64,000 nt of DNA, taken from assembly GCA_026770705.1 (NCBI GenBank), contig JANJGN010000033.1, forward strand, positions 9,486,001 through 9,550,000. The letters run 5' to 3'. This document shows positions 1 to 15,800 of the stretch, piece by piece. The DNA is from Isurus oxyrinchus (Eukaryota). Each line of letters begins with the position of its first letter. The stretch's first letter is position 1. The translations under genes and the position numbers were made by a program. The notes under the pieces are model-generated. The model saw nothing but the letters and a program-made list of their open reading frames with translations. It had not been told where the DNA came from and did not search any database.

Positions 1-2420
1 CCCTCAGTACTGACCCTCTGACAGTGCAGCACTCCCTCAGTACTGACCCTCTGACAGTGCAGCACTCCCTCAGTACTGATCCTCTGACAGTGCAGCACTC
101 CCTCAGTACTGACCCTCTGACAGTGCAGCACTCCTTCAGTACTGACCCTCTGACAGTGCGGCACTCCCTCAGTACTGACCCTCTGACAGTGCGGCCCTCC
201 CTCAGTACAGACCCTCTGACAGTGCGGCCCTCCCTCAGTACAGACCCTCTGACAGTGCAGCACTCCCTCAGTACTGACCCTCCGACAGAGCTGCGCTCCT
301 TCAGTTTTGACGCTCTGACAGCGCGGCGCTCCCTCAGTACTGACCGTCTGACCGTGCGACGATCCCTCAGTACTGACTCATTGACAGCGCGGCGGTCCCT
401 CAGTACTGACCCTCCGACAGTGCAGCACTCCCTCAGTACTGACCGTCTGACCGTGCGACGATCCCTCAGTACTGACTCATTGACATTGCGGCGGTCCCTC
501 AGTACTGACCCTCCGACAGTGCAGCACTCGCTCAGTACTGACCCTCCGACAGTGCGGTGCTCCCTCAGTACTGACCCTCTGACAGTGCAGCACTCCCTCA
601 GTACTGGTCCTCTAGCAGTGCAGCACTCCCTCAGTACTGACCCTCTGACTGTGCGACGATCCCTCAGTACTGACTCATTGACAGTGCGGCGCTCCCTCAG
701 TACGGACTCCCTGACAGTGCAAAACTCCCACTTTTCTGACCCTCTGTCAGTGCGGCACTCCCTCAGTACTGACCCTCCGACAGTGCAGCACTCCCTCAGT
801 ACTGACCCTCTGACAGTGTGGCACTCCCTCAGTAAAGACCCTCCGACAGTGCAGCACTCACTCAGTCCTGACCCTCCGACAGTGCAGCACTCCCTCAGTA
901 CTGGCCCTCTAGCAGTTTGGCGCTCCCTCAGTACTGACCCTCTGACAATGTGGCATCCCTGAGTATTGACCCTCCGACAGCGCGGCGCTCCCTCAGTACT
1001 GACCATCTGACAGTGCAGCACTCCCTCAGTACTGACCATCCGATAGTGCGGCAATCCCTCAATACTGACCCTCCGACAGTGCAGCACTCCCTCAGTACTG
1101 GTCCTCTAGCAGTGCGGTGCTCCCTCAGTACTGACCCTCCGACAGTGCAGCACTCTATCAGTACTGGTCCTCTAGCAGGGCGGCACTCCCTCAGTACTGA
1201 CCCTCTGACCGTGCGACGATCCCTCAGTACTGACACCCTGACAGTGCAGCAGTCCCTCAGTACTGACTCATTGACAGTGCGGTGCTCCCTCAGTACTGAC
1301 CCTCCGACAGTGCAGCACTCCCTCAGTACTGGTCCTCTAGCAGGGCGGCACTCCCTCAGTACTGACCCTCTGACCGTGCGACGATCCCTCAGTACTGACA
1401 CCCTGACAGTGCAGCAGTCCCTCAGTACTGACTCATTGACAGTGCGGCGCTCCCTCAGTACTGACCCTCCGACAGTGCGGCACTCCCTCAGTACTGACTC
1501 TCTGACAGTGTTGCACACCCTCAGTACTGACCCTCCGACAGTGCTGCGCTCCTTCAGTATTGACCATTCGACACTTCAATACTCCCTCAGTACTGACCCT
1601 CCGACAGTTGCACACGCCCTCAGTACTGACCCTCCAACAGTGCAGCACTCCCTCAGTACTGAGCCTCCGACAGTGCAACACTCCCTCAGTCCTGACCCTC
1701 CGACAGAGCTGCACTTCTTCAGTTTTGTCCCTCTGACAGTGCAATGCTCCCTCAATACTGACCATCCGGCAGTTGCACATTCCCTCAGTACTGACCCTCC
1801 GACATTGAAGCACTCCCTCAGTACTGACCCTCAGACAGTGCGGCGCTCCCTCAGTACTAACTCTCTGACAGTGCGGCCCTCCCTCTGTACTGACCCTCTG
1901 ACAGTGCGGCACTCCCTCAGTACTGACCCTCTGAGAGTGTGGCACTCCCTCAGTACTGAGCCTCTGATAGTGCGGCACTCGCTCAGTACTGACTCTACGA
2001 CAATGCGGCACTCCCTCAGTACTGACCCTCTGACAGTGCGGCACTCCCTCAGTAAAGACCCGCCGACAGTGCAGCACTCCCTCAGGACTGTCTCTCCGAC
2101 AGTGCAGCACTCCCTCAGGACTGTCTCTCCGACAGTGCAGCACTCCCTCAGTACTGACCCTCCGACATTGCAGCACTCCCTCAGTACTGACCCTCCGACA
2201 GTACGGCACTCCCTCAGTACTGACCCTCCGACACTGCAGCACTCTCTCAGGACTGACTCTCCGACAGTACAGCCCTCCCTCACTTCTGACTCTCCGACAG
2301 TACAGCCCTCCCTCACTACTGACCCTCCGACAGTACGGCACTCCCTCAGTACTGACCCTCCGACATTGCAGCACTCCCTCAGCACTGACTCTTTGACAGT
2401 ACTGCACTCCCTCAGCACTG
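1..2420. repeat. 33-bp tandem repeat (minisatellite), ~73 copies, open at the window start
   Basis: Unit CCCTCAGTACTGACCCTC(T/C)GACAGTGCAGCACT repeats continuously. It contains the palindrome TCAGTACTGA. Local multi-unit duplications have offsets 99 (341/440) and 165 (1166/1331). Confidence 0.98.
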
Positions 2421-2457
2421 CACAGGGAGATTTAGCCTGTGTTCTGTTCTCGAGTCC
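2408..2457 (-). mobile_element. SINE remnant contiguous with the last 33-mer
   Basis: CCCTCAGCACTGCACAGGGAGATTTAGCCTGTGTTCTGTTCTCGAGTC resembles the reverse complement of the head-proximal body of the SINE at 7051-7506 and of my recalled consensus for the shark Deu-domain SINE. Confidence 0.6.
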
Positions 2458-2616
2458 CTCACGAAAACTTGCTGGTGCACAGTCTTCATGTCGAGAGGCA
2501 TTTAGCTTCATTGTGGTGGCACCTGTGTTTTTGCCAGAGCACTGGTTGGCATTAAGATTGTACCAAGAGGCTGGAGGCTGAGGGAACTTTACTAATTATG
2601 TTTATTGATTCCATAG

Positions 2617-2973
2617 GACAGTTTTCGTGTCACGAAGTTGTCTCAGACCTGAACGCTCAGTGTGGAAGTAACGTTGCTCTCCCTTGTACCTTTTCTGGTG
2701 AAATAAAGCCTTATCGTATTATCTGGCAGAAAGAGCTTTCAGATGGTCAAGTCGTTGTGCACCAGCAGCCTGAAGTCCCTGTCAATGGTGGCTTGCCTTC
2801 CATCAACAAGATCAGGGCAGTAATGCAGCCGGATTGGGATGAGGAGAGAAATGCAAGTCTCACCCTCAAGAGCGTTACATTGAAGGACAGCGGCACTTAC
2901 GTCTGTTATGTTCGTTTCACCTCGGAACATCCAAGCTCAGTTTGCTCTAGGGTATTGTTGGAAGTACATCAAA
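2617..2973 (+). CDS. Internal exon encoding an IgV-set domain (B7/butyrophilin-like motifs) of a putative GPI-anchored IgSF protein
   Basis: Branch-like CTAAT at 2592-2596, acceptor ccatag|GA at 2616/2617, donor CAA A|gtaagt at 2973/2974. Length 357 nt, phase 1-1. Peptide has ALPC (B strand), IIWQK (C strand Trp), NASLTLKSV (E strand) and DSGTYVC (F strand), a canonical IgV signature. Confidence 0.9.
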
Positions 2974-3592
2974 GTAAGTAGATCTGAAAGGGCATCGAGT
3001 AGCTACGTCAATGTAGTGTTCAATGGTTTAATTGATCTGTTTTTGATAATACGAGCCTGACCACTGATCTATGCCCACCTTCCTTGATTCGCTGATTCAG
3101 AGCTTGGGTAAACAGGGGAGCCTTTAGAAGAAGCTGAGCTGCAAGCAGAAAAGGAGACATGTTGTGATTGCAGAGTTATTTTAAAGAACTGCAGATAAAC
3201 CTGTTGCAGGCTTAGAAAGTAGTGTCATCTCTGCACTGTTCCAAGAAATATAAAAGATTTAACAAACTGGCAAGTGCACGACATTCAAACTTAAAGGGAT
3301 ATATTGTGGAGCTTGACCACAGAGCAAGCAAGAGCAGCTTCTATTTACAAAGTGCCTTTAGCTTCATGAAATGGCCTGAGGAAAGCCTTGCCATATGCAA
3401 TTGCAGGTCGGAGGTGGGATTATCTGCAGGATTCCTTGTCCCACACTGCCCACTAGTTACCCGACCGATGTGGACAAAGAATTGGGAAAACAGCCTCATC
3501 AAATTCCTCCCTGTCTTTTTTTACGAGACCAACACCCAGGGTGAAAGGTTAAAGTGATGTGGCGGGGAACAAGGAACTGGAATGAAAAAGCG

Positions 3593-3910
3593 AAAACAGA
3601 AACAGAAATACCTGGAAAAAACTCAGCAGGTCTGGCAGCATCGGCGGAGAAGAGCACAGTTGATGTTTCGAGTCCTCGTGACCCTTCAACAGAACTAAGT
3701 AAAAATAGGAAAGAGGTGAAATAAATTGGATGAGTGGATATATTTCACCCCTTTCCTATTTTTACTCAGTTCTGTCGAAGGGTCATGAGGACTCGAAACG
3801 TCAACTGTACTCTTCTCCGCCGATGCTGCCAGACCTGCTGAGTTTTTCCAGGTATTTCTGTTTCTGTTTTTGTTTTGGATTTCCAGCATCCGCAGTTTTT
3901 TTTTTGCTTT
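3593..3910. mobile_element. Foldback of a Penelope-LTR-like repeat: inverted arms 3593-3723 and 3741-3870, with the + copy continuing to ~3910
   Basis: Arms are reverse complements over ~130 bp with about 6 transitions and 1 indel, around a 17-nt spacer. The GAAGGG..GAC.CGAAACGT motif is typical of Penelope-like terminal repeats (family assignment from recall). Confidence 0.75.
3767..3807 (+). ncRNA. Minimal type I hammerhead ribozyme-like motif (core A6 replaced by U)
   Basis: CAGTT-CTGTCGA-A-GGGTC-ATGAG-GACTC-GAAA-CGTC-AACTG. Helix I is CAGTT/AACTG, helix II is GGGTC/GACTC, followed by the GAAA box, a palindromic ACGT in place of helix III, and a GUC cleavage triplet. Confidence 0.55.
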
Positions 3911-3959
3911 TAAGGAACCGGAATGCTCTGCTTGGAATAAACCAGGTTTGGGGGGTACT

Positions 3960-4335
3960 TTTGATGGCAGCTTTCGAACGCTTGGAGGGTTTTGACAGAA
4001 TACACAAGGAGGGGATTTATCCTTGCAGTGGCTGAAGGGTCAAGAATCAGCGGACACTGATTTAAAATTATGGCAAAAGGTGAAATGAGGGAAAACTGCT
4101 TTTTACCCAACGAGTGGTTAAAATTTGGTGGGCACTATCTCATAGGGCGGTGGAGACCGATTCAAAAGTGCCTTTCAAATAGGAATTGGATAAATACTTG
4201 AAAGAGAAAATAATAGCTGGGATCTTGGGGAAGAGTGAGGGTGGGTGAGCAGGACTGACTGGATTGCTCTACTAAAGGGCTGGCACATACCTGATGGGCT
4301 GAAAGGCCTGCCTCTATGCTGTACTTTTCTATAAT
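3960..4335 (+). mobile_element. Degenerate CR1-type LINE 3' fragment
   Basis: LMAAFERLEGFDRI resembles CR1 LIEVFKIMKGFDRV. It is followed by FFTQRVV-like and ELDKYL-like DNA and the tail GATGGGCTGAAAGGCCTGCCTCTATGCTGTA. Confidence 0.8.
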
Positions 4336-4340
4336 TGTAA

Positions 4341-5065
4341 GATATGGAATGCAGAAAGTTAGCTTGCGGGTACAGCAAGCAAATAGGAAGGCAAATGGCC
4401 TGTTGACTTGGATTCCAAGGGGATTGGGGTACAGGAATTAGAAGCTCTTGCTAAAATTGTACAGGACCTTGGTGAGACCAAACCTGGAATACTGTACACA
4501 GCTTTGGTCTCCAAGATTAAGGGAGGATATACTTGCATTGGAAGTGGTACAGCGAAGGCTCACTCAACTGGAGGCAGCACAGCGCAGGTTTACTAAACTG
4601 GTCCCTGGGATGAGGGGATTATCCTATAAGGAGAGGCTGAGTAAGTTGGGTCTGTATTCCCTAGAGTTTGGAAGAGCGAGAGGCGGCCTTATTGAACCAT
4701 ACAAGGCCCTGAAGGGGCTTGACCGGGTGGACGCTGAGATTGTTTCCGCTGGTCGGGGGGGGTCTAAAACACGGGGGCACAGACTCGCGATAAGGGGACC
4801 GAACATTTAGGACTGAGATGAGGAGAAATTTCTTCGCTCAAAGCGCTGTGAATTTTTGGAATTCTCTACCCGTAGAGGGACGTGGAGGCACCATCGTCGG
4901 TAAAATGGAAGGCCGGGATAGACAGAATTTTGGTCTCTCAAGGGGTCGACAGATATGAGGAATGGGTGGGAAAATGGGTTTGAAGCCCAAGGGTCAGCCA
5001 TGATTGTATTGGGCAGTGGAACAGGCTCGAGGGGCCGAATGGCCTACTTCCGCTCCTGTTTTGTG
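4341..5065 (+). mobile_element. 5'-truncated CR1-type LINE (end of ORF2 plus 3' UTR)
   Basis: ORF 4448-4810 reads LYRTLVRPNLEYCTQLWSP...QRRFTKLVPGMRGLSYKERL..LGLYSLE..RGGLIE..TRGH, the classic CR1 ORF2 C-terminus. Tail is GGGGCCGAATGGCCTACTTCCGCTCC. Confidence 0.93.
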
Positions 5066-5125
5066 CGTACCTATGGCCGTATCTAACTTATCCGTCATCG
5101 TGACTCTGTTGCTTTCCTTCCGTAG

Positions 5126-5452
5126 GTGCAGAGCTTTGCTGGGTGATGCCTGCGCCGGTCACAGTGGAAGCTGGGAGAAAGCAGGACCCCACATGGCCCT
5201 CCAACCCAAAGTGCTTCAACTCCGAGGAGCTGGACGTGTCCTGTAGGCACGGTCAAGGCTCGCCTGAGCAGCTTTGCAAGCTCAGCGAAGGGGGAGCGAC
5301 AGGAGATCTCCGGGGTGAGAATTGCACCATGAGCCTGGGAGGTCTCCAGATGCCGATCCGCTCTGTCACTCGACGAGACGACTACGAGTGTTGCCTTGGA
5401 GACGGCACAACCAAGCGGAAGTTGTGTGTGTGCTCTAGCGTCAACGTCACAG
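5126..5452 (+). CDS. Internal exon encoding a Cys-rich, divergent Ig-like second domain
   Basis: Pyrimidine-rich acceptor gctttccttccgtag|GT at 5125/5126, donor ACA G|gtaaaa at 5452/5453. Length 327 nt, phase 1-1, in frame with the IgV exon and free of stops. Motifs: PAPVTVEAG (A' strand), PKC, D-D-Y-E-C and VCSSVNVT. Confidence 0.78.
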
Positions 5453-5509
5453 GTAAAATCTCTCTTGAGCCCCTCGCCAATTTGTCCTCTCCCTACCATG
5501 ATCCGTCAT

Positions 5510-6240
5510 AAGCTCCTTGTGGCAGTCAAAGAGGCCATTCTGCCCATCAAGCCCATGCTAGCTCTCCGTAGAGCAATCCATGCTCCCAATCCACCCCCCC
5601 CTCCTGCTCTATCCCCGTATCCCTTTGCGAGTTTATTTCCCTTGAGCATCCATCCAATTTCCTTTTGAAATCATTCATCGTCTCCGCTTCCCCCCACCTC
5701 CACCACCCCCCCCCCAACCCTCCCTTCGTGGGCAGCGAGTTCCAGGTCATTACAACCCACTGCATCAAAATATTCTTCCTCACATCCCCCTCCTACCCCG
5801 CACCCCCTGTATCTCCTACCCACATCTGTGTCCCCTACTTCTTCTGCCAACAGCTAACGTCTTTTCTTTACCCAGGGCTGAATTTTACAGCACCTCCCAC
5901 TGGTAGGATTTTACAGCCCAGCCGAAGTCTATGGGCTTTCCGTTGGCTCGCCATTTTTTTACTGCCAAAGGCAAATTGGAGGCTCCATTCACAATGTAGG
6001 ATCCCGCTTTTCACCTTAGGAGGCCTATCACCCGAATCAGGCTGCGACAGGGCTGTAAAACTCTGCCCCTTCTTATATAAACCTTGTGCCCCTCTGTCAG
6101 ATCCCACCCCACCCCACCCCCCACCCCCAACCTCCTTCACCCCAAGCAGAGCAATCCCGGCTTCTCCAACCCAACCTTGTCGCTAGAATCCCTCAGCCCC
6201 TGGAAGCACCCTGGTAAATCTCCGCTACACCATCTCAAGC
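5510..6240 (-). mobile_element. Degenerate CR1-type LINE 3' fragment interrupted by a MITE-like insertion
   Basis: Minus-strand ORF 5547-5783 contains WVVMTWNSLP...EAETMNDFKRKLD. CR1-like sequence resumes at 6069-6240. Confidence 0.75.
5875..6068. mobile_element. MITE-like element, 194 bp, with 17-bp imperfect terminal inverted repeats
   Basis: GGGCTGAATTTTACAGC (5875-5891) versus the reverse complement of 6052-6068, GGGCAGAGTTTTACAGC: 15/17 identical. No target-site duplication could be read. Confidence 0.6.
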
Positions 6241-6559
6241 GGTAGTGGTATTGTCACTGTCACTAGACGAACGATCCAGGGTAATGCTACTGGGACCTAG
6301 TTCAAATGCAGCCATGGCAGAACCCAATAAAAAAGTTGACATTGGGGAAGAGTAATGATTATCAGTCATTTTGAAAACCCGTCTGCTTCACTAATGCCCT
6401 TTAGGGAAGGAAATCTGCTGTCCTTACCTGGACGGGCCTAGTCTCCATGTGACTCCAGGCCCCCCCAGCAACGCCATTGATTCTTAAATGCCCCTGAACG
6501 AGGGCAAAGAGGGGATGGGCCCAGCCAGTGAGAGCCCATGTCCTGTGAACGAATAAAAA
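6241..6559 (+). mobile_element. SINE with a LINE-shared 3' tail
   Basis: B-box-like GTTCAAAT near 6300, a body matching an abundant elasmobranch SINE (recall), and a tail 6502-6559 that aligns to the LINE tail at 11628-11698. Confidence 0.7.
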
Positions 6560-6679
6560 GGGGGTTAGTTGAAATGTTAAATCCAGTTAATAAACCTGGA
6601 AGTGAAAACGAGTTCTCAGTACTGCGGAAGCGTCCCTGATTGTGGTAAAAGGTTTTCACTAGTGTTCTTTTGTTAACAG

Positions 6680-6768
6680 CGGCCGCAAGCAGTGCTGAAT
6701 CGATGCTCGGGAAACACGGTTGGCATTCCATCACCCTGCTGCTAACCGTCGCTGCAATTCTTGTCTGA
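6680..6768 (+). CDS. Terminal coding exon, GPI-anchor-signal-like C-terminus
   Basis: Acceptor tgttcttttgttaacag|CG at 6679/6680, phase 1. Reads (A)AASSAESMLGKHGWHSITLLLTVAAILV* with TGA at 6766-6768: small residues, a polar spacer and a 12-residue hydrophobic tail ending at the stop. Confidence 0.72.
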
Positions 6769-6895
6769 AGAAAGCGCGCCCCAACAGAGTTGGCAAAGGA
6801 TGAAGGGTGGCATTGGAGAAAGGAGATTTTGCTGAGCGAAGGGGCAGGTTTGAAAGAGCAAATAGGCCTTTGTCCGGTCCGGTTTCTTTTGCTGA

Positions 6896-6901
6896 AATAA
6901 A
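6896..6901 (+). terminator. Candidate polyadenylation signal AATAAA
   Basis: First AATAAA after the stop codon, ~128 nt downstream of TGA 6768. Confidence 0.55.
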
Positions 6902-7050
6902 GATAAAATTGCCTCCATGACAAGGCGGATAAATCAATCCTCGCAGGGCTGAATCAATCCTCACGGGGCTCCATGCATCGGGCATCCAGAGCAAAGATGT
7001 GCCTGGATTACTCACCCTCAGGGTGGCGGTGCTTTCCGAGTTCAAGCCAA

Positions 7051-7506
7051 GGCTCGGTGGGTAGTGCTCCCACCTTTCAGACTGAAGATCGGGGGCTTTC
7101 GAGCCCCACTCCTCGGGGCTCAATTGAGCACAGCATTCTTGGGGTGACGCTCCCTTGCGCTGAGGGGGTGGGGGAGGGGGAGGCGGTGCGGCACATTTGG
7201 AGGCACAGTCCTCCTCAAGGAAATGTTGAACTGCGGCCCAGTCCACCCTCTTGGGTGGGAGTGAAGGGTTTGAAGGGAAGGGGGGGGTGGGGCGGTGGGG
7301 GAACTCCTCCCTCGTGCCCTGACTAGTGCTTACGCCTCAATCGACCTCACAAAAAACAGGCAATGGGAAGTTCGTGGGATCTTGCTGTGTACAAATTGGC
7401 TGCTGCGTTCCCCACATGGCCCACTGTCCATGAAGCCCTTTAGGATGTTGTGAAAGGCCCTATATGAAATGCGGGTCTTTTTTAAAATCCTTACATGAAT
7501 GCAAGC
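7051..7506 (+). mobile_element. Near full-length, diverged tRNA-headed Deu-domain-type SINE (SacSINE1-like)
   Basis: Head GGCTCGGTGGGTAGTGCTC...GAGCCCCACTCC...TTGAGCACA, central GTGGGATCTTGCTGTGTACAAATTGGCTGCTGCGTT, and L2-like tail GTGAAAGGCCCTATATGAAATGC. Family name from recall. Confidence 0.7.
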
Positions 7507-8129
7507 CTATTTTGATATTTTTAATCTTTTGTCCTTAACCTGAACCGCAAAATCTGACAAATTTCTCAACCACACTAATGACTGATGGGGATCACAGGAT
7601 GTGGTTTAAGATCATTATTACTGGAAGGAACATTATGACTGCATCCGCCAACGTTACTGGAAGCCCGGGCTGTTTGCACAGCTCTGTAACGTGCATGTTT
7701 ACCAGTCGCTTTTTCTTCACACCAGTGTCAACACTTCAGAAGGGGTTGAAAACTGAATTGGTTCTCAGATGGAGCAAGTCTGTGGCCAAGTCTCCTACAG
7801 TCCTGAGCCGGGTGTGAAGTTCATTTCACACACTGAGCGCGTTGCAACACTTAAGTAAAAGCTGACTGGAAATCATGTTCCACGTGATGCTGTTTCAGTC
7901 ACAGGGCTCTGTTTTGGCCTGTCAAAGCAACTCACTTCTGTCCTAAAGGAAAACAGAGGCTGTCTAGAAGGTAAGATAGCAGAATGTAACAACAGCAAAC
8001 CAAAGTCAACGCTCGGTGAAAGCACAACTTAGAAATAAGTGACCGATGGTCATGCATGTGTGGTTGGGGGGAATGGGGGGTGCGGGGTGGGGTTAGCATG
8101 TGCAGACTAGCTCTCTGTTGTACATGGAC

Positions 8130-8520
8130 TGTACAGCAGAGAAAAGGCCATTCGGCCCATCTGCTCCAAGCTGGCATTTCTGCCCCACACGAGCCTCCTC
8201 CCACCCGGTCTTCACCTCACCCGATCAACATATCATTTATTCCTTTATCCCTCATGTTTCCCCTTAACTGTATCTATACTGTTCACCTCAACCGCTTTCT
8301 GCTGATAGTTCCACATTCTCACCACTCTCTCTCGTGAATTCCCATTTGGATTTATTGGTGACCACCTTACATTTATGGCCCAGAGTTTTGAATCTCCCCA
8401 AGCATTTTCTCTACACCCACCTTTTCTAATTTAAAAGCACCTTATCAAAACCTCTTTCTAATTTAAAAGCACCTTATCAAAATCTCTTTCTAATTTAAAA
8501 GCCCTCTATCAGGTCACAAC
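8130..8520 (-). mobile_element. CR1-type LINE 3' fragment
   Basis: Begins with TGTACAGCAGAGAAAAGGCCATTCGGCCCAT, the reverse complement of the CR1 tail also seen at 5030-5060, followed by degenerate ORF2-end sequence. Confidence 0.75.
8421..8505. repeat. 32-bp tandem duplication (~2.6 copies) inside the CR1 fragment
   Basis: TCTAATTTAAAAGCACCTTATCAAAACCTCTT starts at 8425, 8457 and (partial) 8489. Confidence 0.9.
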
Positions 8521-8546
8521 TTCAAGAGAAATGATTCAAACAACAT

Positions 8547-8930
8547 CAACTTGCATTTGTATAGCGCCTCTAACATAGTAAAACCTTACAAGGTCCTTTG
8601 CTGGAGTGACTATCAATCAAGGTTTGACACTGAGCCACATAAGGAGATATCGGGATGGGCGACCAAGAGCTTGGTTCAAGAGTTAGGTTTTACCAAGCGT
8701 CTTAAAGGAGCAAGAGAGAGAGGCGGGGAGGCTTAAGGAGTGAATTCCAGAGCCTGGGGCCTAGGCAGCTGCAGGCCCAGATGCCAACGGTGGAGCGATT
8801 AAAATCAGGGATGCTCAAGCGGTTGGAATTGGGGGTGCGCAGAGATCTCGGAGGGCCGTGGGGCTGGAGGAGATTGGGAGAGGGCAAGGCCACAGAGAGA
8901 TTTGAAAACAAGAGAATGTTAAAATGCAAG
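8547..8930 (-). mobile_element. L2-type LINE 3' end
   Basis: Minus ORF 8702-8929 reads LRTPNSNRLSIPDFNRSTVG..SCLGPRLWNSLLKPPRLS (L2 ORF2 end). The tail is the reverse complement of AGGCGCTATACAAATGCAAGTTG. Confidence 0.8.
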
Positions 8931-8989
8931 CTTGCGATATTGTCATCTGGAGCCTGATTGTGAGGGATCGGTCAGTTCACACTGGGCTC

Positions 8990-9130
8990 TATTATTAATG
9001 GGACGTGGGTGTCTCTGGCTAGGCTACCTTCATTGCCCATCCCTAGTTACCCTTGAGAAGATGGTGGTGAGCTGCTTTCTTGAAGCGCTGCAGTCCACGT
9101 GCTGTTGATACTCGTTACAATGCTGCTGAA
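8990..9130 (-). mobile_element. LINE 3' tip, same family as 11283-11698
   Basis: The reverse complement contains TTCAAGAAAGCAGCTCACCACCATCTTCTCAAGGGTAACTAGGGATGGGCAA, matching 11595-11647. Confidence 0.8.
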
Positions 9131-9345
9131 TAGTTTTGGTTCAAATTTTCTCCAAATCAGAATAGCTCGGGATCGAATTTCATTCAATGATCGTGCCTTG
9201 GGGTGTTTTAACATGTTAATACTCATGTTTACCCTGTTGTCTTATCATATTCTCCTGACTGACTCTCCTGAATTTCTGTTTCACACAATGTGTGACAACC
9301 CCAGCAACTCACAAAGGGGGAACTGTCCAAACTTGTCCATTGTAG

Positions 9346-10262
9346 GAATGAAGGAGGCGAGGGAGGGAGGGAGGGTGTGAGACTGAGTGAAGGAGGCGGG
9401 AAGATTGAAGGAGAGAGAGGAGACTGAGGGAGGGAGGGAAGACAGAGGTAGGGATGAAAAGAATGAAGGCTGAAAGAGAGGGGGTAAGACTGAGGGAGGT
9501 CAGGAAGCTTGGTTTGGGGGGAAGAGGGTGAAGGCTGAGGGGAGGAGGAAGGTCGGGAGACTGAGGGGGGGGGAATGTGAGGCTGTGCGAGGGAGAAAGG
9601 GAAGGAGAGAGGGAAGACTGAGGAGGCGAGGGTGCAACAGCGAAGGGAGAGAGGGAGGGAAAAGGATAGAAAAGAGAGAAGGAAGATTGAGGGTAAGGGG
9701 GTAAGACTGATTGAGGGAGGGAAGATTGAGGGAGAGAGGGATGACTGAGGGAGGCCAGGACACTGAAGGAGGGAAGGAAACAGTGAAGGCTGAGGGAAAG
9801 AGAGAGGAAGGAGGACGGGATGGAGATAAGGAAGACAGGGAGAGAGGGAAGACAGGGGAAAGGAGGGAGAGAGGGGAAACTGAGGGAAGGAGAGAGAGGG
9901 AAGACTGAGGGGAGGGAACATGAGACTGAAGTAGGAAGAAAGGGAGGGAGAGAGGGAAAAGCTGAGGGAGGTCAGGAGGCTGAGGTGGAGAATGTGAGGC
10001 CGAGGGAGGCAGAAAAGGAGAGAGGGGGAGGCTGAGGGAGGGAGAGAGAGCAAAAACTAAACGAGAGAGGGAGGGAAAAGGATAGAAAGGAGAGAGGGCA
10101 GATAGAGGAATGGAAGAAAGGAGGGGGATGACTGATTGAGGGAGGGAAGGAAGATTGAGGGAGAGGGGAAGACTGAGGGAGGCCAGGAGACTGAAGGAGG
10201 GAGGAGAGAGCGAAGGCTGAGGGAAGGAGGGAGGAAGGGGAAACTGTGGGAGGGAGGGAGGG
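9346..10262. repeat. Purine-rich (GA) low-complexity tract with a recurring GACTGAGGG core
   Basis: The + strand is almost only G and A. An internal duplication has offset ~416 (AAAAGGATAGAA at 9660 and 10076). Confidence 0.85.
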
Positions 10263-10919
10263 ACAAGCTCCACAGTTTGGAGAATGAGTGGATGGTGCAA
10301 CCACTCGGCATTTCGACACATTGAGGCAGCAGGGCTGAGGTGATGGAACCTCCGGTCACTTCACCGAGGGTGTGTTCAGCGTCTAGTTTGGTGCCGCCTC
10401 CTGTGTGGCGTGAATGTCAGTTTGCGGGTCCGGTTGCAAACGGTGCAGTTGAGGCCACTGTTGGGGGGGTGGGGGGAAGGTGGGGGGGGAAGGTGGGGGG
10501 GGGGGTGAGGGTGTGCCCACCTGTCCCATCGGGAGCCTGACTCCGTTCTCCTCAATCCTTTGAAGCTGTTGGAGGACAGGAGCCCCTCCATTTGGATAGG
10601 TCAAGGGTCGACGGTAGTAGAGGCCCAGTTCACAGGCCCGGAACCTGGCTCTCCGGGTGTCTTGGGACCTGAGTTTGGGGGTGTCGCCTTGCTGGGGTGG
10701 GGGGGGTGGGGGGGGGGGTTCCCGTGCCCATCTTGGCGTGGGATGCCACCTCTGGAAGTGTCCGGCCCAGCAGGAACTTGGGCGTCGGGGCGTTTGATTG
10801 ACGGGGTTAGCGAACGAGACAAGATGGAAATAGAAAAGAGGCGTCAGATATTGGAGCTCACCAGTGACAATGGGCAGATTGCGAAAGACTGAACTGCATT
10901 CAACTCCTGATATTGCGGG

Positions 10920-11190
10920 TGCATTGTAATGTGGAGAATGTGCCAGCTAATCTGGGCACAGCAAGCTCCCACAATCAGTAAAAGTGATAAGTAAAGAGAT
11001 ATTCTGTTTTCGACGATATTTATCTTTGCACGTAATGTAGGCTGAGTTAGGCCACAGCGCTCAGGGACGACCCACCACACCGCTTCCCCCCCACCCCCTC
11101 TGCTCTTCTCCCGTTGGGATCTTTTACATCCGCCTGAGACTGGGAAGGCTGGGCCCTCGGTTAATTGTTGAGTCCGACAGTCCCGAGAAC
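10920..11190 (-). mobile_element. Deu-domain-type SINE fragment
   Basis: GCACAGCAAGCTCCCAC is the reverse complement of the core at ~7375-7390. TGGGATCTTTTACATCCGCCTGAGA...CCTCGGTTAA...TCCGACAGT ends in the same TCCGACAGT seen in the 33-mer. Confidence 0.7.
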
Positions 11191-11282
11191 TCTCACTGAC
11201 CATAGCAAACATCAGGCGAGATTCCAGCAGGAACCACAGACCCCAGGAGGTAAAAGCAGAGTGAAAAGCAGGAGGCAGCACA

Positions 11283-11698
11283 TCCACAAACATTCACTCC
11301 CTCCACCACTGATGCACAGTAGCAGCAGTGTGTGTACCATCGACAAGATGCACTGTAGCAACTCACCAAGGCTCCTTTGACAGCACCTTCCAAATCCACG
11401 ACCTCTACCATCTAGAAGGATAAGGGCAGCAGACACATGGGAACACCACCACCTGGAAGTTCCCCTCCAAGCCACTCACCATCCTGACTTGGAAATATAT
11501 CGGCCGTTCCTTCACTGTCGCTGCGTCAAAATCCTGGAGCTCTCCCTCCCTAACAGCGCTGTGGGTGTACCTACACCACAGGGACAGCAGCGGCTCAAGA
11601 AGGCAGCTCACCACCACCTTCTCAAGGGGCAATTAGGGATGGGCAATAAATGCTGGGCCAGCCAGCGACACCCACATACCATGAACGAATTAAAAAAA
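11283..11698 (+). mobile_element. 5'-truncated LINE (CR1/L2 group), ORF2 end plus 3' tail
   Basis: Frameshifted IHSLHH..AVCTI.KMHCSNSPRLL...SLPNSAVGVPTPQ...KKAAHHHLLKG, ending GGGCAATTAGGGATGGGCAATAAATGC...GAACGAATTAAAAAAA. Confidence 0.85.
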
Positions 11699-11940
11699 GG
11701 CCAGATTGAAGGGCATAGTGGATCACGGGAAGGTGCCCACTTCTCAGTTGCCTCCATCAAGCCAGGTCTCAAGATCATGGAGGCCTTCCATTCATCACTC
11801 TGCTAAGGCTGCTCCTCTGATCCACTTTCGGATCTTGGACTGGAATTCAGTCTAGGACCTTGACTACGCCCCATAACCATCGCTTTCAGCAAGGCAGGGC
11901 CTTTGTTTGACCACCCACCACTCCGCCAGAGAATCTGAGA

Positions 11941-12505
11941 AATTTACAGCATGTAATGAGGCCCTTCGGCCCATTGCGTCGGCTCCTAGGCATCCACCCT
12001 AAATCCACCTCTGTCTCTTGGGCCATAGCCCTGTAGATTTTGACCTTTCAAGAAGTACTTCTTTTAAGTGTTAAGAGGGTTTCAGCCTCTACCACACCTT
12101 CAGTCAGTGAGTTCCAGGTCCCTCACCACCCTCTGGGTGAAAACATTTCTCATCGAGGCCCTTGTAAACCTCTCACCTCTTACCCTAAATCTATGCCCCC
12201 TGGTTATGGATCCCTCAGCCAAAAGGAATAGGGCCTCCCTATCCACTCTACCTAGACTCATCATCTTAACCACCCCAGTTCAGCCTCCTCTGTTCCAAAA
12301 GAAACAGCCCCAGCCCATATAATCTCTATCGCTGAAATTCTCCAGTCGTTGCCCTGTAAACCTCAGCACTGCGATGTGGCATAACTAGTGTTTTATTCAG
12401 TTCCAGCATCACCTCACAGCTCTTACGTTTTACACCTGGGCTAATAAAGCAAAGTATCCCTTAAAACCTCTTGACCACCTCACCTACCTATCCAACCACC
12501 TTCAG
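11941..12505 (-). mobile_element. Degenerate CR1-type LINE 3' fragment
   Basis: Tail reverse complement GAGGCCCTTCGGCCCAT. GAGTTCCAGGTCCCTCACCACCCTCTGGGTGAAAA read on the minus strand gives FFTQRVVRTWNS-like sequence. Confidence 0.75.
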
Positions 12506-12856
12506 GACTCACTAAGGTCAGGGAGGCATAAGAATTCCTAATGAGGAGTGACTAGACTCATCGGCATGCTGCCCTCTCCCACGATTGGCCCTTCTCAGGG
12601 CAAGGAAAGGGTTTTAAGATCTAGTTGCACCAGAGCCTTGGCCTGGCTGGTGAACTGGAAACTCACAAGGGACAGTTCATTAAATGTGCCCAGAAAAGTG
12701 TGACTCATCAGAGAAGTAGGAGCCCCTCAATCTGAAGTACAGGCACATGTTGGGTTGAATGGCCTGTTTCAGTGCTGTAAATATTGTGTCATAAACATTC
12801 ATGACACAAACCGATTATACTGATTCCACCCAAGCAAAAAGGTTCAACCGAATTCA

Positions 12857-15800
12857 GAGCACTGTGCACAGTTCCAGTCTCCATATCACGCTTGGAGCAC
12901 TGTGCACAGTTCCAGTCTCCATTTCGCGCTTGGAGCACTGTGCACAGCTCCAGTCTCCATATCACGCTTGGAGGAATGTGCACAGTTCCAGTCTCCAAAT
13001 CACGCTTGGAGCACTGTGCACAGTTCCAGTCTCCATATCACGCTTGGAGGAATGTGCACAGTTCCAGTCTCCATATCACACTTGGAGCACTGTGCACAGT
13101 TCCAGTCTCCATAACACGCTTGGAGCACTGTGCACAGTTCCAGTCTCCATAACACTCTTGGAGCACTATGTACAGTTCCAGTCCCCATATCACACTTGGA
13201 GCACTATGCACAATTCCAGTCTCCATATCAGGCTTGGAGCACTGTGCACAGTTCGAGTCTCCATATCACACTTGGAGCACTGTGTATAGTTCCAGTCTCC
13301 ATATCAAACTTGGAGCACTGTGTACAGTTCCAGTCTCCAAATCACACTTGGAGCATTGTGTACAGTCCGGTCTCTATATCACACCTGGAGCACTGTGTAC
13401 AGTTCCAGTCTCCAAATCACACATGGAGCACAGAGCACAGTTCCAGTCTCCATATCAAACTTGGTGCACAGTGCCAAGCTCCAGTCTCCATATCATGCTT
13501 TGTGCATTGTGTACAGTTCCAACCTCAATATCACTCTTGGAGCACTGTGCACAGTTCTAGTCTCCATATCACACTTGGAGCACTGTGCACAGTTCCAGTC
13601 TCCATTTCTCGCTTGGCGCACTGTGTACAGTCCCGGTCTCCATATCACACTTGGAGCACTGTGGACAGTTCCAGTCTCCATATCACGCTTGGAGCACTAG
13701 GCACAGTTCCTGTCTCCATATCACACTTGGAGCATTGTGCACAGTTCCGGTTTCCATATCACACTTGGAGCACTGAGCTCAGTTCTGGTCTCCATGTCAC
13801 ACTTGTAGCATTGTGCACAGTTCCGGTCTCCATATCACACTTGGAGCACTGTGCACAATTCTGGTCTTTTATCACATTTGGAGCACTGTGTACAGTTCTG
13901 GTCTCCAAATCACACTTGGAGCATTGTGTACAGTCCGGTCTCCATATCACACTTGGAGGAATATGTACAGTTCAGGTCTCCAAATCACAATTGGAGCACT
14001 GCGCACAGTTCCGGTCTCCATTTCCCACTTGGAGCACTGTGCACAGTTCTGGTCTCCAAATCACACTTGGAGAATTGTGTACAGTCCGGTCTCCATATCA
14101 CACTTGGAGGAATGTGCACAGTTCTGGTCTCCATATCACACTTGGAGCTCTGTGTACAGTCCGGTCTCCAAATCACACTTGGAGCACTGTGCACAGTTCC
14201 AGTCTCTATATCACACTTGGAGCACGCTGCACAGTTCGAGTCCCTATATCACACTTGGAGCACTGTGCACAGTTCCAGTCTCCATTTCTTGCTTGGAGGA
14301 CTGTGTATATTTCCGGTCTCCATATCACACTTGGGGCACTGTGGACAGTTCCAGTCTGCAAATCACACTTAAAGCACTGTGCACAGTTCCAGTCTCCATA
14401 TCACGCTTGGAGAACTGTGCTCAGTTCCTGTCTCCATATCACACTTGGAGCACTGTGCACAGTTCCTGTCTCCATATCACACTTGGAGCACTGTGCACAG
14501 TTCCAGTCTCCAAATCACACTTGGAGCACTGTGCACAGTTCCGGTCTCCATGTCACACTTGGAGCATTGTGCACAGTTCCAGTCCCCAAATCACACTTGG
14601 AGCACTGTACACAGTTCCAGTCTCCAAATCACACTTGGAGCACTGTGTATAGTTCCAGTCTCCAAATCACACTTGGAGCACTGTGTATAGTTCCAGTCTC
14701 CATATCATATTTGGAGCACTGTGTACAATTCCAGTCTCCACATCACACTTGGACTACTGTGCACAGTTCCAGTCTCCACATCACACTTGGAACCCTGTAC
14801 ACAGTTCCAGTCTCCAAATCACACTTGGAGCACTGTGCACAGCTCCAGTCTCCATATCACGCTTGGTGCACCATGTACAGCTTTAGTCTCCATATCACAC
14901 CTGGAGTAGTGTCCACAGTTCCAGCCTCCATATCACACTTGGAGCACTGTGCTCAGTTCTGGTCTCCACTTCTCACTTGGAGCACTGTGCACAGTTCCGG
15001 TCTCCATATCACACTTGGAGCACTGTGTAAATTTCCGGTTTCCATGTCATACTTGGAGCACTGTGCACTGTTCCAGTCTCCATATCACGCTTGGAGCTCT
15101 ACGCACAGTTCCAGTCTCCATATCACACTTAGAGCACTGTGTACAGTTGCGGTCTCCAAATTTCACATGGAGCACAGAGCACAGTTCCAGTTCTCTATAT
15201 CACACTTGGATCACAGTGCACAGTTCCGGTCTCCATACCATACTTGGAGCACCGTGTACAGTTCTTGTCTCCATATCATACTTGGAGCACCGTGTACAGT
15301 TCCAGTCTCCAAATCACACTTGGAGCACTGCGCACAGTTCCAGTCTCCACATCACACTTGGAGCACTGTACACAGTTCCAGTCTCCATATCACGCTTGGA
15401 GCACTGTGCACAGCTCCAGTCTCCATATCACGCTCGGAGCACTGTGCACAGTTCCAGTCTCCATATCACGCTTGGTGCACTGTGTACAGTTCCAGTCTCC
15501 ATATCACACTTGCAGTAGTGTCCCCAGTTCCAGCCTCCATGTCACATTTGGAGAACTGTGCACATTTCTGGTCGCCACTTCTGACTTGGAGCACTGTGCA
15601 CAGTTCCAGTCTCCAAATCACACTTGGAGCACTGTGCACAGTTCCAGTCTCCATATCACACTTGGAGCACTGTGTACAGTTCCAGTCTCCAAATCACTTG
15701 GAGCACTGTGCACAGTTCCAGTCTCCATATCACACTTGGAGCATTGTGTACAGTTCCAGTCTCCATATCACACTTGGAGCACTGTGCTCAGTTCCAGTTG

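Follow-up and report, generated by a model that had tools for sequence, protein, structure and literature searches.

A 33-bp satellite array of probable SINE origin beside an Ig-like exon in Isurus oxyrinchus

We analyzed a 64,000-nucleotide stretch of Isurus oxyrinchus DNA, hereafter called the window (assembly GCA_026770705.1, contig JANJGN010000033.1, positions 9,486,001 to 9,550,000 of the forward strand). The left end of the window is occupied by a tandem array at positions 1-2420, for which TRF returned a period of 33, 73.4 copies, 82% matches and a score of 2904. The array is truncated by the window start at position 1, and the 73.4 units are the part of it that lies inside the window. 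Each unit is made up of a SINE-like core of approximately 30 nt, the SINE-sense strand of which is the minus strand, and a 3-nt linker that reads ACC on the plus strand (counted per position: A in 65, C in 66, and C in 56 of 73 units). About 190 nt past the array there is an Ig-like exon (2617-2985, plus strand), recognized from an ORF at 2598-2981 with a V-domain-like translation and an AG acceptor near 2616; this places the array shortly upstream of the exon, either in an intron or in an upstream region. Two copies of a SINE family are present further along, and at 12857-64000 the window is filled by 1346 copies of a 38-bp satellite that runs past the window end. The Ig-like gene is wedged between the 33-bp and 38-bp satellites; the latter spans at least 51 kb and is some 10 kb away from the 33-bp array.

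When the units of the 33-bp array were aligned in register, one 1-bp deletion was seen near position 955. The units differ from their consensus at a mean of 3.8 of 33 positions, with approximately 1.4 mismatches on average in the first eight units (left, interior side) and approximately 4 in the last twelve (right edge). Two CpG sites are present per unit and each is about half decayed: position 19 is C in 32 and T in 40 units, and position 28 is G in 34 and A in 32. Near-identical blocks of several sizes were found, with five units at 1123-1320 and 1288-1485 (98-99% identity), three units at 331-429 and 430-528 (98%), and single units at 2080 and 2113 (100%). The array is therefore still turning over by unequal exchange or slippage. 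Three of the six reading frames are open in 1-2581, on both strands, yielding ORFs of 312, 543, 324, and 226 aa with an 11-residue period. Together with the nearby exon, such long array ORFs can mislead gene prediction, and they are a ready source of spurious predicted proteins.

The terminal unit and its junction are located at 2388-2423 (minus strand), where ...ACTG is followed by CAC in place of ACC. Positions 2410-2429 read CCTCAGCACTGCACAGGGAG, with GCAC at 2420-2423; the initial annotation had claimed that the last unit ends in GCAC at this point and not in GACC, and the sequence bears this out. In SINE sense GACC is GGTC and GCAC is GTGC. GGTC is found at 42 of the 66 unit starts in the window and AGTC at 10, whereas GTGC is found at a single one, the terminal junction. 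The neighbour of the last unit is therefore not a further unit, and the joint falls in the register of a unit start.

To characterize the junction and its flank in other material, four public sequencing runs (among them X1, X6, X15, and X19) were mapped to 2345-2945 at 80% likeness. X19 is an independent whole-genome library of the window's own species, and X15 comes from a second species. In X19, 14,964 reads depart from the mapped sequence at 2420 and carry on as array. A contig of the second species (record 16 of X15, 671 nt) spans 2371-2945 with 12 differences and no gaps; it includes one and a half units of the array's end, the junction with its flank, and the Ig-like exon. This gap-free crossing shows that the junction did not arise in assembly and that it is older than the split of the two species; the joint between array and flank was already present in the common ancestor of these two sharks.

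The X19 data also show how abundant the unit is. Out of 13,355,879 raw reads, 70,203 (0.53%) matched the mapped sequence, nearly all of them on 2345-2428. At least 29,673 of the matching reads show tandem joints, where the read goes back to an earlier position, and another category, 31,512 matching reads with loose ends, has a consensus that continues as array. By these two signs at least 87% of the X19 matches are array reads. Dividing the depth of the unit contigs by the unique depth gives approximately 7-9 x 10^5 units in both species, a ratio that should not be read as a copy number. The 33-bp family would be a major satellite of both genomes, on the order of 10^7 bases provided that the library is representative. 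The family is common to the two species and is present in other elasmobranch-like contigs, as described below.

The two SINE copies within the window were used for comparison with the unit. The first, at 7010-7485 on the plus strand, is old and looks full-length, with a tRNA-like head, a unit-like segment at 7179-7203, a body, and a tail. A B-box-like stretch was seen by eye at approximately 7090-7105, and a G-rich insertion precedes the decayed unit-like segment. The unit core matches 7179-7203 at 18 of 24 positions, which is not significant alone; this is the sole in-window copy that spans the segment, and it is decayed there. The second copy lies at 10920-11181 on the minus strand. Read in SINE sense it starts with ACTGTCGGA, which is the 3' part of the unit core, and it ends on the window strand in TCCGACAGT at 11173-11181, an exact 9-mer corresponding to unit positions 17-25 and likewise not significant alone. 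That the minus-strand SINE ends in a segment of the 33-mer, as had been noted earlier, is thus correct. The two copies are homologous, with a local score of 24 where none of 1500 genomic controls exceeded 20; the homology is centred on a conserved GTGGGAGCTTGCTGTG motif in the 3' part of the plus copy, and in both copies the unit-like segment lies approximately 175-205 nt upstream of this motif. Both are very decayed, and ARAGORN and Rfam identified no tRNA within 1-13500. The parent SINE is a candidate member of the SacSINE1/Deu-SINE family. Elements of this family, as Nishihara 2006 is cited in PMC5499810, combine a tRNA-related head with a conserved central domain and a tail of the L2 type, and are widespread in sharks. 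The layout of the in-window copies is comparable by eye.

Beyond the array, the sequence at 2421 to approximately 2535 (outer limit approximate) is putatively what is left, in decayed form, of the head (5' end) of the parent SINE and is collinear with the terminal unit on the minus strand, as judged from contig depth and anchored alignments. Contig depth at 2429-2449 is approximately 16 times the unique depth, which holds from 2471 onward. Position 2424 is a T in 60 of the 68 X19 raw reads that cross the boundary, giving GCACTGGGAG, and the same T is found in paralogous contigs of three runs (35 in X1, 20 in X6, and 28 in X15). The raised depth and the agreement of the paralogs on T indicate that the first 20 or so letters past the array occur in multiple copies in each of the two species. 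An array at another locus, L002, carries CTCCCAGTGC right before its first unit, at the place where the window, read in the same direction, shows CTCCCTGTGC, so that the two flanks have in common a boundary motif CTCCC(A/T)GTGC, a 10-mer with one mismatch.

Alignments of the flank were anchored at the unit boundary, with anchors picked by eye, and scored against 4000 controls. The score of the window flank against the L002 flank was reached by 7 of the 4000 controls, and that of the L002 flank against the head of the plus copy by 21. For the window flank against the plus-copy head, 29 controls reached the score over 40 nt and 106 over 70 nt. The anchored p values of approximately 0.002-0.007 are uncorrected and stand among some 30 comparisons; the three anchored comparisons are mutually consistent and suggestive of a SINE-head flank. 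Free local alignments of the window flank with the plus copy, the L002 flank, or a further array (L083) were not significant, nhmmer with a MAFFT profile built from other flanks found nothing to link the array flanks with the in-window SINE copies, and ARAGORN and Rfam reported no tRNA in 2421-2560. The proposed resemblance of 2421-2560 to the SINE at approximately 7120-7170 is weakly borne out by the anchored comparison (29/4000 at 40 nt), but not by free alignment or nhmmer. In what we presume to be the shark SINE consensus, the 30-nt core would be present once, and this consensus would match 2421-2500 at approximately 60% without gaps. The SINE identity of the flank draws on the 20-25 letters at the boundary, the anchored alignments, and this presumed consensus, and we infer it for the part beyond approximately 25 nt. 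Taken together, there is modest support for a terminal unit that extends in register into SINE sequence on one side.

Further arrays were fished out with peptides from the array ORFs, by word searches and by an exhaustive protein search with a two-frame peptide (P0002:176-240). The exhaustive search yielded three true array ORFs among 50 matches, two of which led to DNA. Altogether five further arrays were recovered, L001, L002, L084, and L085 from JGI sample 3300026616 and L083 from a Logan run, all with periods of approximately 33 and related units; with that of the window this makes six arrays at different loci. The JGI sample is a metagenome with shark- or ray-like host contigs, judged by its elasmobranch SINEs and exons. 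Two unit subtypes were seen within it, AGTACTG...TGTCAGAGG and AGTGCTG...TGTGGGAGG. A word search with the plus-frame array peptide gave no matches, and a 26-mer scan of genome contigs and viral contigs found nothing. Eighty metagenome loci that contained a 16-mer of the unit matched neither the array flank nor either of the SINE copies, and these were taken as chance matches.

In L001 (848-1765) and L002 (480-908) the array starts approximately 50-200 nt from an apparent exon splice donor, and the exon in L001 is CUB-like. The 33-bp arrays are often intronic and near exons, and gene callers read through them. The initial annotation had asked whether array flanks are collinear halves of a SINE. 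On the head side this is clear in L002, possible in L084, where ATTCCCGT is followed by a unit entered midway, and ambiguous in L083; the head side of L085 is truncated by the contig end, and in L001 no recognizable SINE was found on either side. The tail sides gave no such result: the flanks of L083, L084, L085, and L002 did not match the SINE bodies of the window significantly, and the conserved 3' motif was absent from them. A conserved-motif search likewise produced no tie between the array flanks and the in-window copies. The tail-side sequence may be so old that it is beyond pairwise detection.

The linker between units was compared across the six arrays, in SINE sense throughout. GGTC is found at 5 of 5 positions in L084 and 13 of 14 in L085, in addition to the 42 of 66 in the window; it is the commonest linker in L001 (7 of 16) and is tied with GGAC in L002 (3 of 6). 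L083 has mostly GGGC (4 of 5), which is one step from GTGC and also one step from GGTC. GTGC does not occur between units in any array examined. At the linker positions 2355-2357, covered by approximately 68,000 reads, no variant reached 10%.

These counts bear on how the unit arose. It had been proposed that slippage on two GCAC tetramers created the unit and that any SINE copy can seed such an array. In its strict form, each array would be born on site in an ordinary SINE copy by slippage between two GCAC tetramers 33 bp apart. GCAC does stand exactly at the terminal junction of the window and the same tetramer is found at the L002 junction; moreover, the loci are unrelated and genic, with the Ig-like exon here and, by our own reading of the contigs, exon-like sequence at L001 and L002. 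However, this process predicts GTGC linkers, and the observed linker departs from the prediction at two positions: GGTC dominates in the window, L084, and L085, is commonest or joint-commonest in L001 and L002, and is uniform across the reads at the threshold given above. We therefore regard recurrent birth on site as improbable, and the notion that any copy can seed an array finds no support in the comparison. Since a derived linker is common to unrelated loci from several samples, a single founding unit is favoured over per-copy seeding, and the linkers argue for one such unit that later spread. Of the slippage proposal, the GCAC on the head side (window and L002) stood and the GCAC-type linker between units did not, while no second GCAC was legible in any of the copies read; a two-base change that arose later in a single founder would reconcile the GACC linker with slippage on GCAC. 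The spread may have taken place through a SINE subfamily with an internal tandem or through dispersal as satellite DNA. The fixed linker, which is foreign to the SINE, is a marker that separates one founding event from recurrent seeding across an assembly, and it makes the "library" model of satellites testable.

The first of these routes can be stated more fully. A SINE subfamily with at least two GGTC-linked units would have been retrotransposed, scattering small SINE-flanked arrays over many loci, among them introns, and some of these arrays would then have expanded in place. This would account for the common linker and for the head-side boundary at the window, at L002, and perhaps at L084, and SINEs with short internal duplications of approximately 30 nt have been reported (PMC10702118). 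LINE-driven copying, however, begins at the 3' end, and a tail is expected in such copies; no tail-side flank matches the SINE body, and a SINE copy with just two units did not turn up in the sequence examined. Seeds carried by a SINE are accordingly a tentative proposal, one that we consider possible but not probable. Somewhat more doubtful still is the broader claim that a SINE subfamily with a short internal tandem was the vehicle that scattered satellite seeds genome-wide, gene introns included. If it were true, a major vertebrate satellite would owe both its sequence and its dispersal directly to a SINE, with one seed family reaching approximately 0.5% of one library's reads and a similar level, by contig depth, in a second species.

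Two other explanations would remove the SINE as the source. The 33-bp satellite could be the older element, one monomer of it having been taken up when the SINE body was assembled. SINE bodies are often of unknown origin, and the evidence for polarity here is the anatomy of the junction alone. Yet the boundary tetramer differs from the linker between units and the array ends in register, which is what expansion inside a host sequence leaves behind, and each in-window SINE copy holds at most one decayed unit; we find the reverse direction very hard to credit. We attach equally little weight to an array that simply abuts unrelated unique sequence and resembles a SINE by chance. The non-significant free local alignments and nhmmer search are what such a coincidence would produce, but the first 20 or so nucleotides past the array recur in many copies in both species and their paralogs agree on one consensus, the L002 10-mer recurs with one mismatch at the same boundary-anchored position, and three anchored comparisons agree.

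Our preferred explanation, to which we assign a probability of roughly 0.75, is that the 33-bp array is a satellite derived from a SINE. Slippage or unequal exchange between short direct repeats that flank a segment of the SINE would be the likely cause of the first unit, and the founding unit would then have become fixed with a 3-nt linker foreign to the SINE (GGTC in SINE sense, GACC on the plus strand of the window). Arrays then grew and turned over through unequal exchange or replication slippage, in steps of one to five units, to which the near-identical blocks in the array testify directly. At the present locus the array ends in register in what appears to be a decayed SINE head, from 2421 to approximately 2535. 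The microhomology step and the arrival of arrays at many loci are the parts of this scheme that we reconstruct and do not read from the array itself. The initial description of the array as a slice of a SINE that runs into its parent is upheld by the in-register end, the GCAC, and the multi-copy flank, but not by the free alignments or the tail-side flanks.

Copying from inside a short jumping element is a known way for satellites to arise. To our knowledge, few cases directly tie interspersed repeats to tandem ones, and the best-documented case that involves a SINE is that of squamates, in which the satellites stay small. SINE-derived satellites (sSat) have been described in 56 squamate genomes (Vassetzky, Kosushkin and Ryskov 2023, PMC10702118). 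Their unit comes from the interior of a tRNA-related SINE and is 67 nt long in the main snake form; a SINE flank on one side is the commonest pattern, subtelomeric regions are preferred, they are not amplified like typical satellites, and their existence outside squamates was left uncertain (PMC10702118). The shark array resembles them in several respects. Its unit is a putative internal slice of a SINE, and one longer terminal unit runs on into apparent SINE sequence on one side only. The arrays occur at many loci per genome with a family common to related species, and have locus-specific multi-unit subvariants. The units are also more homogeneous (3.8/33 mismatches) than the SINE copies, which barely align with one another. 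It differs from the squamate satellites in its elasmobranch host, in a unit of 33 nt as opposed to 67 nt in the main snake form, in a 3-nt linker foreign to the SINE, and in its abundance, approximately 0.5% of reads where the squamate families lack the amplification of typical satellites. Satellites derived from retrotransposons are also known in plants (PMC7004042). As in those, a short slice of a mobile element has been amplified into long head-to-tail arrays; unlike those, the array would come from a non-coding SINE and has kept its connection to the putative parent copy.

No paper on a SINE-derived satellite in sharks was found in a literature search that left out most subscription journals. 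The squamate type of architecture is now seen in a cartilaginous fish, at about half a percent of reads and common to two species, with one array still joined to its putative parent copy by a junction that is orthologous in both. What we describe is a known kind of satellite, notable for its abundance and for its preserved, orthologous parent junction.

Other repeats were observed between the SINE-like flank and the 38-bp satellite. A G/A-rich degenerate minisatellite occupies 9350-10260, with TRF periods of 17-27. The 10-mer ACTGAGGGAG, taken from the 33-bp unit, occurs four times on the plus strand of this region, against a chance expectation of 0.39 for the window as a whole. The idea that the minisatellite is an old array copy, decayed and in inverted orientation, was rejected, as it has no 33-bp periodicity. 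At 8419-8511 there is a 32-bp tandem repeat (2.9 copies, 93% identity) inside an apparent other interspersed repeat. A near-perfect long inverted repeat at 3590-3870 would form a hairpin and gave sub-threshold Rfam matches to the plant miRNA families MIR7696, MIR8562, and MIR1507 on both strands; we read it as a probable foldback or MITE-like element, not as a miRNA gene.
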